Source of the DNA: Pocillopora damicornis
Taxonomy: Eukaryota
Direction: 5' to 3'
Assembly (NCBI RefSeq): GCF_003704095.1
Contig: NW_020846475.1
Location: 434,001 to 498,000, forward strand
DNA length: 64,000 bases
A program made the translations under genes and the position numbers. Below are positions 18,849-24,914 of this stretch, in pieces (the first letter of the stretch is position 1; the number at the start of each line of letters is the position of its first letter). The notes under the pieces are model-generated. The model was given only the letters and a program-made list of their open reading frames with translations, did no database searches and had not been told where the DNA came from.

Positions 18849-21800
18849 ATGGGTACAGCTGGTAGTTGTAGTAGAGGTGAGTTTTCTAGGTTCATACTTT
18901 CCTCATTTGAACCAGGGAAATGATCGTAGCTATTCTTTCATCACAGGTGAAGTCATTCAGAACGAAATACCCACGTTCAAGGTTGTTCTTGTCGGTAAGT
19001 TTTGCACATTCAATTCGATCTTTTGATGAGTGGCTGATACATGTAGCTCCCTGAGTGTGTTGTTCGATAGTTTAAAGCGAAGGCTTGCAAACTTTATGCT
19101 TCTCTTCGCGAGAGATGTGGTCCCAGATACAAATAGATAAGGTCGTTTTAAAACCAATAACTTTTTCAGCAAATTTACTGAATATACAAGCTCACGACCA
19201 ATGTTTATCGCAATACAATTATGCGAAGCTATTTACTCAAAACAGATTTCACATTATATTGAATTGTCTCGTTGATAAAGCAAGGATTACGTAAATGAGG
19301 AATATTTTTCGATGATCAGATGGGGAAACGTTACTTTCCTTTAAGAACTTGTGCTTTTTTGCTCTGTTTATCGAGTTAAATGTTAGACAGGGCTTGCACG
19401 GAATTTTTCCAATTGGAAACGCAACCGTATTTGGAAGTCTGAAATTTTCGTTGACAAACATAACAATTTTCTTTCATTCGACTTCTATCATATATCAAGA
19501 AGTGAAGACCTTTGAGGAAACTTTCGCTTTATTAAAAAAAAAAAACGAAAACTGTTTATAGCGACGGACATCGAAGAGTCTCGGTATACCACACTGAACA
19601 TGATCGATATTGAGTGGGAAGTGCTAAGTACTAACAGGAAAGTAATTAGTGCCAGGGAAGGTTTTATTTCTTATTACAAGGAAATTAGATCGTAGGGCTC
19701 TTTAAAGTGATGAAAATTTTACAGCAAATAATCTATGACATTCTGTCAAAATGGCGCGAGACTACACCATTTGATATAAATTTGGAGATTATGGATTGAG
19801 ATAAGACATAGTGCAGCATATTACCGGTAATAACTCTTACTCGGCTCTCATAATTCGGATGGAAAGGTTCTTATTAAGTAGCGTTCCCCTCTTGGATTTA
19901 AAGGTACTGGTGTATGACCCGTGGAATGTTTATTGAGTTTTTTCATCATGACAGTCAAATCAATTGTCTTGCGAATATTGCTTTTCTTCACCAAAGACTT
20001 TACTATATATTAAGCTGGGAGACTGTAGAATTTGGGTCAAACTCAAGCCAGAACTAGCATGTTTGAGCTGATTTCTTTGCAGTAAACACAATGTGGGTAG
20101 CATACCTCTCTGTCTAGTAAAGTAAAATAAAAGTAAATTTTTTTTTTTGTGATTGATTTAAGGTGACCCTGAAGTTGGAAAATCCAGTATATTTTTACGC
20201 TACACAAAAAACCAGTTTGACTACAGTTATCAGCCCAGTGTCTCTGTGAGTATTGGAAATATTGTCAAGCATGTCAACGTCCCATTTGAGACCATTGTGT
20301 CTGTGGCATTATGGGACCTTCCTGGGCGAGAGGAAATGGACTTGCGAAGAAGCTATTACAAGGATGTGGATGCTGCTATTGGTAAGAAGTACAACTCAGG
20401 GCCCAGTTATATGGTCTTGGGTAACCAACACAACCCTCTCATGAGTTTGAAAATTCAACCAACCATTTGTATAGGTAATAGCATGATTTCCAGTGAAATT
20501 TGGTGTTAATAAGCACAAATATATTTTTTCAAGGACAATAAAATTGCAATTTGTAGTCTTTAAAAATTTACAATTGCTTATTACACCAAGTTGCAGGAGA
20601 ATTAAATCATGTTATTACTTGTTAATACTTTACGTGAAAAAAAGCATCACAGAAAGTCAAGACAGACAAAATTTTAAAAGCATGCGCAAGCTATTTCTAA
20701 TTTGCACTTGTGTTAGAACTTTGCATTTGTGTTATATGAGATTTCACTCGTTTTCAGCCAATCATAAGTGCATAATTTTTTCATGTACAATGTTAACATG
20801 AAAACAATGAACTTGTCTTGAGGGGTAAGGGGATTTAACCCTTTCACTCCCAAGATCTGATTAGTAATTCTCCTTACTACCTGCCATATAATTCTTATGA
20901 TGTTAGTTCAAAGAATTTGGTATTGGATCAACTAATAATCCCATGATTGACATTCTTCTCTATTCTCATCACCTGCCTGCTTGATATTGTATTCATATTG
21001 TAAGGAGAAATTCTGTCTTGGTCACTTGTGGGAGTGAAAGGGTTAAGAGGGCAAGTTGTTTCACCTTAGTAGGTAGGATAACCCCTCAGGTCTGTCAACT
21101 TTTCCTTATATAAACACTTTGGCTTGCATGCCTGAGATGTGACAGCTCAAATTGTGTCCAATGTTTAACCTGGCTAGCTGTTACATGAGAGACCAATAAG
21201 GGAAAAGCTGTTACAATTCACAACTCCATGTAAAAATCTCCATGAAGTTGTCTCGAGGGGAGGGTTGTGGTATAATATAATTAGGGTAATTGCTATTGTT
21301 CCCTTGTTCCTTTGTTAGAGGTTACTATGTGATAGATGATTTTAATTATTTACTTAAAAGAATCAGAATATTTCACAGTACATTTGAATTTCTCAGTAGA
21401 TTAAATGGGTCAATAAATCATCATGATGGTAAATTTCCTTATTTGTACTGCTCAGTTACATGATATGCAGTCATTTTAAATTAAAATTTGTGAGTTCTCT
21501 CTTCCTTTTAGTTGTTGTTGACATGGATGACATTGACTCTGTGACTATGGCTGGAACCTGGAAACAAGACATTGTAAATAATGCCGTATTTACAGCCAAT
21601 AATGGAAATATAAAGGAAAACATTGCAGATTCTAAACTGATACCAATTCTACTTTTGGGGAACAAGATGGATAAGGTAAACTATTAGTAAGATTCATTGA
21701 ATAAAGGGGGTGAGTCTCCAAAGAAACTGTGGTGCTGTGTCAGTAACAGAGTATAAAAGGTAATTTAGTATTATCAACTGAGTTGATAATGTAAATCGGC

Positions 21801-24800: not shown

Positions 24801-24914
24801 TGCAATATTGACGCTAACTGCACCAGAATAGGAGAAGCTGTGGCTACAGCTATGGAAACCATGACAGCTGTTGATAATGACTATAAAAAGATTAAGGCAG
24901 CCATGTTGTGGTAG
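18849..24914 (+). CDS. Atypical Rab-like small GTPase (456 aa) with an N-terminal MGxxxSC acylation motif and a long C-terminal helical domain
   Basis: Nine GT-AG exons: 18849-18876, 18947-18994, 20163-20381, 21512-21675, 22295-22407, 22915-23143, 23232-23432, 24024-24125, 24648-24914; total 1371 nt, open frame. G1 FKVVLVGDPEVGKSS, G3 LWDLPGRE, G4 LLGNKMD, G5 VSAK. Ends in AAMLW* with no terminal Cys. Confidence 0.88.
20835..21046. mobile_element. piggyBac-like MITE, best-preserved copy of a family present about 11 times in the window
   Basis: TTAA on both sides and 14-bp TIRs CCCTTTCACTCCCA/TGGGAGTGAAAGGG. Related, partly decayed copies at ~3370-3537, 10622-10833, 24206-24399, 25822-26297, 31764-31982, 38614-38829, 39094-39230, 41763-41959, 47147-47356 and 48152-48346. 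Confidence 0.85.
21756..21931. repeat. Inverted-repeat element in intron 4 of the Rab-like gene; one arm recurs at ~29516-29610
   Basis: 16-bp perfect terminal inversion aaaggtaatttagtat / atactaaattaccttt, with imperfect arms of about 65 bp. Confidence 0.75.

Follow-up and report, generated by a model that had tools for sequence, protein, structure and literature searches.

The 64,000-nucleotide window analyzed here (positions 434,001 to 498,000 of contig NW_020846475.1 from the coral Pocillopora damicornis) contains, at 18849-24914 on the plus strand, a gene for a 456-aa protein that joins a Rab-like GTPase (G) domain to an additional C-terminal domain. We consider it probable (roughly 0.6) that this gene is the coral's orthologue in an old animal family of single-copy, atypical GTPases related to Rab32, whose members would be anchored to membranes by N-terminal acylation, bind guanine nucleotide, hydrolyze GTP slowly if at all by the canonical route, and act through the C-terminal domain. 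The initial annotation of this DNA, made from the letters alone, had described the architecture and the lack of a place in any named subfamily, and both points stood; it missed that the gene belongs to an old pan-animal single-copy family. As to origin, we give even odds to a scenario in which an unnamed GTPase family arose from a Rab32-like ancestor in the first animals by exchanging prenylation for N-acylation, adopting a switch of the "Q61R" type together with a Pro, and gaining a domain of new fold ending in Trp, the family having been overlooked through its loss in vertebrates, flies and worms.

The gene consists of nine exons separated by introns that all have GT-AG borders, and its in-frame coding sequence of 1371 nt specifies 456 aa and a stop codon (Table 1). 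In poly(A) RNA libraries, derived from studies of coral and of marine metatranscriptomes, about 0.24 of the sampled words of the stretch were present, which equals its exon share. Contigs of four RNA runs from four studies were aligned to 18790-24789, and the junctions of exons 3-4-5-6-7-8-9 were found exactly at the predicted borders. Single contigs spanned exons 3-4-5 and exons 6-7-8-9 in runs X1 and X9, and exon 3 to at least exon 7 in runs X5 and X10. The 78 nt lying upstream of exon 3 in the X5 contig correspond to exon 1 (28), exon 2 (48) and 2 further nt; this contig reaches about 690 nt beyond the stop codon, and the RNA contigs overall about 690-1120 nt, as judged from their lengths. 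A Logan mRNA contig of 2385 nt (L008) from a near-identical sister species aligned in order to each of the nine exons, with exon 1 matched at 18840-18880. Its open reading frame (ORF; 11-1381) encodes P0060, the 456-aa NCBI protein of Pocillopora verrucosa, which differs from the window product at 4 residues (99% identity) and was used as its proxy in full-length searches and models, the window exons being searched singly. No further coding exon was found in L008 downstream of exon 9, its alignment being continuous to 25910, about 1 kb past the stop. Since L008 covers exon 1 and runs unbroken from exon 9 to 25910, exon 1 is used, the 5' untranslated region (UTR) measures only about 10 nt, and there is no extra Cys-bearing exon. 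The coral gene is real and expressed.

The GT-AG borders, the reading frame, the RNA junctions of exons 3-9 and the alignment of L008 over all nine exons bear out the nine-exon, 456-aa model of the initial annotation. That annotation had made its reading depend on the use of exon 1 (MGTAGSC), which L008 includes, and on transcripts that neither stop before exons 7-9 nor gain a Cys-containing last exon, which is what the RNA contigs and L008 contain. The sequence features that it listed (MGTAGSC on a 28-nt exon, GDPEVGKS, YQPSVSVSI, WDLPGRE, NKMD and SAK) are all present as described, and so are the acidic run EEERNDDDDE between G4 and G5, the KMKKKK stretch past the G domain and the AAMLW end without a tail Cys.

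Homologues of the whole protein were found across animal phyla. A profile of exon 9 searched against 1.84 billion representative proteins gave 29 matches, of which 28 were family members or exon fragments and the remaining one, a leucine-rich-repeat protein, was spurious. Five of the matches were long family proteins (445-496 aa) in which the match lay at or near the C-terminal end. Four of these start with MG and carry a Ras domain; P0034, the remaining one, is an isoform truncated at its N-terminus. Exon 9 used in a word search retrieved only exon-sized coral fragments, owing to the length window of that search, and Pfam analysis of single exons recognized only Ras and Roc, on exon 3, and nothing in exons 7-9. 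When the amphioxus member P0036 was used in a word search, 62 relatives were listed, and the orthologues number at least 60 in total. They come from deuterostomes (amphioxus, crinoids, starfish, brittle stars, urchins, sea cucumbers and hemichordates), from non-bilaterians (stony corals, anemones, octocorals, hydrozoans, jellyfish, Trichoplax and the sponges Oscarella and Sycon), and from the brachiopod Lingula, nemerteans, annelids, molluscs and one bryozoan. All EukProt entries with a species accession were from animals. In the databases the members are called "uncharacterized protein" or bear automatic names taken from a best match, such as Rab-32B, RAB29, Rab-7L1, ypt5, ypt7, RabC and RGP2.

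A maximum-likelihood tree of 47 members (quick search, one sequence per species) recovered Anthozoa (octocorals and hexacorals) together with Medusozoa, the cephalochordates, Ambulacraria and Spiralia, with sponges and Trichoplax on long basal branches; the window product clusters inside the stony corals. The gene tree follows the species tree, as it should for a gene that the animal ancestor had in single copy and passed on by vertical inheritance. Total protein length among the orthologues ranges from 429 to 642 aa. The echinoderm, Lingula and some worm orthologues (P0055-P0058, P0064 and P0087, including Owenia) measure 520-640 aa, and part of the additional length in crinoids and hemichordates comes from long acidic inserts inside the G domain. 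Annotated hemichordate isoforms (Ptychodera P0034 vs P0049) begin within switch II, without the N-terminal anchor and the P-loop.

Exon 9 also occurs by itself elsewhere in coral genomes. One copy in the same assembly (G000:C3362:244982-245290; L002/L003) is 76-77% identical, with an open frame and an internal deletion; the 10 kb upstream of it contain none of the gene's other exons, and copies of this type are present in other coral assemblies (P0010, P0011 and P0013). A second copy (G000:C918:188799-188935; L004/L005) carries stop codons.

The residues that distinguish the family were counted in an alignment of 47 orthologues. At the N-terminus, M1 and G2 are each found in 45 of the 47 sequences and S6 in 41, and a Cys stands at position 5 (21/47) or at position 7. 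The coral start, MGTAGSC, agrees with the N-myristoylation consensus in its MG, a small uncharged residue at position 3, a permitted residue (S/T/A/G/C/N) at position 6 and the absence of Pro at position 7. An MGxxxS start with an adjacent Cys is a classical dual acylation signal. The G domain has the elements of the Ras superfamily (Pfam PF00071), namely G1 GxxxxGK[ST], G3 DxxG, G4 NKxD and G5 SAK, with the GK[ST] of G1 and the SAK of G5 intact across the family. The Mg-binding position of switch I is Thr in 36 and Ser in 9 of the 47, corals having Ser, and in G4 the residues G148, K150 and D152 are invariant (N149, 42/47). G3 reads WD[LI]PGRE: W76, D77, P79 and G80 show little or no variation, and R81, conserved in 40 of 47, aligns with Gln61 of Ras, as P79 does with Ala59. 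The positions of Ras G12 and G13 hold Pro, Ala or Ser followed by Glu. A basic stretch past the G domain recurs in the members inspected, and the linker that follows is poorly conserved (mean column conservation 0.26). The window product carries all the marks of the family: MG, WD[LI]PGRE, C300, C316, N425 and the terminal Trp. The acylation motif at the N-terminus, the substitution of Arg for the catalytic Gln, the lack of a C-terminal Cys and the extra C-terminal domain, which had been noticed in one coral sequence, are conserved across the roughly 47 aligned orthologues, which represent most animal phyla.

The C-terminal tail of about 190 residues is a family-specific domain without detectable relative. 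An AlphaFold2 model of P0060, built with the 47-sequence alignment, had a mean predicted local distance difference test (pLDDT) score of 84 and a predicted template modeling (pTM) score of 0.51. It comprises a G domain (19-226), a disordered linker (about 227-265) and a tail in which helices 266-302, 313-323, 356-398, 401-407 (short) and 412-455 and a beta-hairpin (333-346) were modeled with pLDDT above 90; values fell below 50 at 229-232 and 236-252, and to 53-68 in blocks over two variable inserts. The 170-aa anemone tail fragment P0019, which is without about 20 of the first residues of helix 1, gave a pLDDT of 96 and a pTM of 0.85. A Foldseek search of the P0019 model, minus those 20 or so residues, gave nothing below E 0.3 against the PDB and no match to the Roc-COR or RapGAP folds. 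The fold search with the full-length model listed matches of the G domain only, Pfam found nothing recurrent in the tail and no COR among the 47 members, and neither a PDB profile search nor an ESM Atlas search matched the tail. Its nearly invariant residues are D269, F296, C300, E314, C316, P381, L387 and N425, with C300 and C316 each present in 45 and N425 in 46 of the 47; W456 is the last residue in all 47 orthologues, and the tail contains no prenylatable Cys motif. In the sponge Sycon ciliatum (P0104), which lies on a long branch, Gly replaces the conserved Cys316.

Two alternative roles for the tail were weighed. The first, which we regard as unlikely, is that of a Roc-COR-like GTPase activated by dimerization, in which the tails would pair and residues across the dimer would replace the missing Gln. 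Pfam does place Roc close to Ras (2.4e-16 vs 8.3e-20; on exon 3 alone, 2e-9 vs 1.8e-9), the Arg after Gly in G3 resembles the Roc domain of LRRK2, and long helical hairpins often pair. ROCO proteins such as LRRK2 and DAPK1 likewise have a G domain permanently joined to the domain that follows; there, however, Roc is followed by COR, whereas the family tail contains neither COR nor any other Pfam family and is unlike COR, and the PDB ranking favors Rabs, with no Roco protein among the 60 best matches listed. A homodimer prediction for two copies of residues 255-456 scored 0.00, which according to the tool is no evidence either way. The second alternative, also improbable, takes the tail as a built-in regulator rather than an output domain: a GTPase-activating protein (GAP) or inhibitor acting in cis, with Asn425, for example, serving like the Asn thumb of RapGAP. 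Rap and Rheb, which do not have the catalytic Gln, use an Asn from their GAP, and in the family Asn425 is conserved in 46 of 47 sequences on a long helix, with G domain and tail always fused. Against this, the full-length model (pTM 0.51) contains no confident interdomain contact, Asn425 is equally conserved in the Gln-keeping Sycon protein, and there is no fold similarity to RapGAP.

For the membrane-anchored family protein that we prefer, the following mechanism is proposed. Gly2 would be N-myristoylated and the nearby Cys palmitoylated, possibly assisted by the basic stretch past the G domain, so that the protein would stay stably on its membrane and not cycle through the GDP dissociation inhibitor (GDI) and the Rab escort protein (REP) as prenylated Rabs do. 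GDI binds prenyl groups, and for this reason it would not be expected to extract the protein. Guanine nucleotide and Mg would still be bound, since the P-loop, the Thr or Ser of switch I, DxxG, NKxD and SAK are kept. Canonical GTP hydrolysis would be disabled or slow because Arg occupies the position of Ras Gln61 and an invariant Pro that of Ala59; Q61R is the classical GTPase-dead mutant of Ras. The protein would then be mostly GTP-bound, or would depend on an unusual partner or a non-canonical route for hydrolysis. The helical tail, on its disordered linker, may be an output module for partner proteins or membrane, with the terminal Trp as a docking residue; its strong conservation, the flexible tether and the invariant Trp fit partner binding.

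Several points weigh against this reading. Arg at the Gln61 position is no proof of inactivity, and the Roc domain of LRRK2, with Arg at that position, hydrolyzes GTP. The Sycon ciliatum protein P0104 is the sole member with Gln in G3 (WDLPGQE), so that Gln has not been lost throughout the family; this Gln may be a retained ancestral state or mere divergence. Acylation, GDI independence, nucleotide state, slow hydrolysis, partners and the effector-like role of the tail are all inferred from architecture, conservation and established knowledge. The pTM of 0.51, with both domains confident, suggests that the tail is not packed in a fixed way on the G domain, so that the model fixes no geometry between them; and, since the fold search used P0019 minus about 20 of the first residues of helix 1, the statement that the tail has no known fold is not a strong one. 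Vertebrates, tunicates, arthropods, nematodes and ctenophores yielded no member in word and profile searches, which covered protein databases and not genomes. The literature covered, which did not include Elias et al. (2012; PMC3383260), mentions neither the gene identifiers nor a Rab-like protein of animals with N-acylation, and the family may have been described before.

The unusual switches also raise the idea of a pseudo-GTPase that binds no nucleotide and works only as a membrane-bound scaffold, which we consider distinctly improbable. A Pro within DxxG, the replacement of Gln by Arg, a shortened switch II and Pro/Ala/Ser plus Glu at the positions of Ras G12/G13 would suit it, but GK[ST], DxxG, NKxD and SAK have all been conserved over more than 600 million years, and the conservation of the nucleotide-binding residues across the sampled animal phyla argues that the protein is not a dead scaffold.

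Among the Rabs, the best PDB sequence matches of the G domain were Rab32, Rab38 and Rab7L1, a PDB sequence search with exon 4 giving only chance matches to repetitive lectins and other proteins. The RabF motifs used by Rabifier are IGVDF, KLQIW, RFxxxT, YYRGA and LVYDIT (PMC3192815); their counterparts in the coral protein are VSVSI, SVALW, EMDLR (one residue shorter), YYKDV and VVVDMD, with a partial match only at RabF4 and RabF5. Switch II is one residue shorter than in Rabs, and the last 30 residues of the window protein contain no Cys that could be geranylgeranylated. The FALK stretch past switch I is common to Rab32, Rab38, Rab7L1 and Rab32LO (Coppola et al., 2016; PMC4728774), and at its place the coral protein has IGNIVKHV and the family the consensus I.NVVKK. 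Because the RabF motifs, FALK and the prenyl tail all fail despite best scores against Rab32, Rab38 and Rab7L1, the protein is best classed as Rab-like and Rab32-related, not as a named Rab. The absence of a named subfamily in the initial annotation accordingly holds, the Rab32/38/7L1 group being the nearest.

That the gene is instead a divergent member of a named subfamily of the Rab32 group (Rab32/38, Rab7L1/Rab29 or Rab32LO) appears very unlikely. Besides the PDB matches, it has in its favor that some entries are named "Rab-32B", "RAB29" or "Rab-7L1" and that Rab32LO shows a similar loss in vertebrates and tunicates. However, compared with Rab32, Rab38 and Rab7L1 (human RAB29), which belong to supergroup III, the family lacks FALK, RabF1-3 and a prenylation Cys, has Arg and Pro in G3, and instead carries the N-terminal acylation motif and the 190-aa tail. 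Rab32LO, which is the "Rab29" of Klopper et al. (2012) and the Rab32B of Elias et al. (2012), is likewise Rab32-related and found in invertebrates and amphioxus, and some family members have been automatically named after it. It is a different gene, for an ordinary small prenylated Rab: identity with it was ruled out on motifs, since its switch II contains two His (WDIAGHERFGH) and its sequence ends in CC, whereas the family has WDLPGRE, a shorter switch II (in the coral, DLPGREEMDLRR) and no C-terminal Cys. None of the Rab alignments in the supplement to Klopper et al. (2012) contains the string WDLPG or WDIPG.

Plant ARA6/RabF1 and Plasmodium Rab5B carry a Rab G domain on an N-terminal myristoyl and palmitoyl anchor, with no C-terminal prenyl group (PMC3398913; PMC3912013). 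Their anchor is of the type predicted for the family, and the same consequence for membrane attachment would be expected, but they are Rab5-type proteins of independent origin in other kingdoms, unlike the Rab32-like family. ARA6/RabF1 and Rab5B keep the catalytic Gln and are not known to carry an extra domain. Rab44, Rab45/RASEF, CRACR2A and RJL/DNAJC27 likewise combine a G domain of Rab or Rab-like type with further domains. In the first three, EF-hands and coiled coils are N-terminal and the prenylated Rab C-terminal, and RJL/DNAJC27 has a C-terminal DnaJ; in the family, in contrast, the G domain comes first and is followed by a domain of no known family. RabTitan, compared with the family by description only, comprises distant sequences without a C-terminal Cys.

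Finally, an artifact in which a small Rab-like gene was wrongly joined to a downstream gene for a helical protein is hardly credible: exon 9-like sequence does occur alone (C3362 and C918) and tail-only entries exist (P0019, 170 aa), but single RNA contigs in independent studies cross G-domain and tail exons, from exon 3 (in X5, from the start codon) through exon 9, L008 contains the whole 456-aa ORF, and gene predictions from dozens of species in different phyla show the two-domain architecture, which co-evolves as one unit.

Repeated surveys have catalogued the small GTPases of animals, and an unnamed single-copy family reaching from sponges to amphioxus would close a real gap in them; a lack of the gene in vertebrates, insects and nematodes would explain why the family went unnoticed. 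Three departures from the rules of Rabs meet in one protein: the anchor sits at the other end, the catalytic Gln is gone, and a domain of no recognized fold is fused on. This makes the family a natural test of whether the GDI cycle, GAP-driven hydrolysis and separate effectors are dispensable. If the proposal is true, the family would mark a membrane-signaling or organelle pathway of most marine invertebrates that none of the standard model animals has. The gene is present in Nematostella, Hydractinia, sea urchins and amphioxus, which makes it amenable to knock-out and localization, and in corals it is of interest as a candidate regulator of a membrane compartment without vertebrate counterpart.

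Table 1. Exons and 3' UTR of the Rab-like GTPase gene, in window coordinates.
Feature	Position	Strand	Content and evidence
Exon 1	18839..18876	+	About 10 nt of 5' UTR and 28 coding nt (ATG at 18849); encodes MGTAGSCSR with the N-myristoylation/palmitoylation motif; GT donor at 18877
Exon 2	18947..18994	+	First beta-strand of the G domain (FKVVLVG); AG/GT borders; L008 aligned at 18945-18996 with 100% identity
Exon 3	20163..20381	+	G1 P-loop GDPEVGKS, switch I YQPSVSVSI, G3/switch II WDLPGRE; RNA contigs from four runs
Exon 4	21512..21675	+	Middle of the G domain, variable insert, G4 NKMD; junctions in RNA contigs
Exon 5	22295..22407	+	Acidic insert EEERNDDDDE and helix ahead of G5; junction 22407->22915 in four runs
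Exon 6	22915..23143	+	G5 SAK, last helix of the G domain, basic KMKKKK, disordered linker (about 227-265); junctions in four runs
Exon 7	23232..23432	+	Start of the C-terminal domain: long helix 266-302, Cys300, Cys316, short helix 313-323; pLDDT >90
Exon 8	24024..24125	+	Beta-hairpin 333-346 of the C-terminal domain (both models); junctions in four runs
Exon 9, coding part	24648..24914	+	Two long C-terminal helices (356-398 and 412-455), Asn425, terminal Trp456, then stop
3' UTR	24915..25910	+	Contiguous with exon 9; L008 alignment unbroken over 24646-25910

Outside the exons, the window contains a run of 100 N at 41488-41587 (assembly gap or masked) and two long ORFs, at 53013-54386 (+; 457 aa) and 1429-2577 (-; 382 aa), in which no Pfam family was found at E 0.001 and which may be single-exon genes or transposon remnants. 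Within the introns, repeats at 20790-21190, 21590-21990 and 24190-24390 reached a summed RNA contig depth of up to about 1e5, and many contigs end at their borders. An 80-nt inverted repeat with 80% complementarity lies at 21756-21931, and 20890 is connected to 24233 by an opposite-strand contig joint, as if one repeat family were present in inverted copies. These intronic repeats are probably abundant short transposable elements transcribed within many genes.

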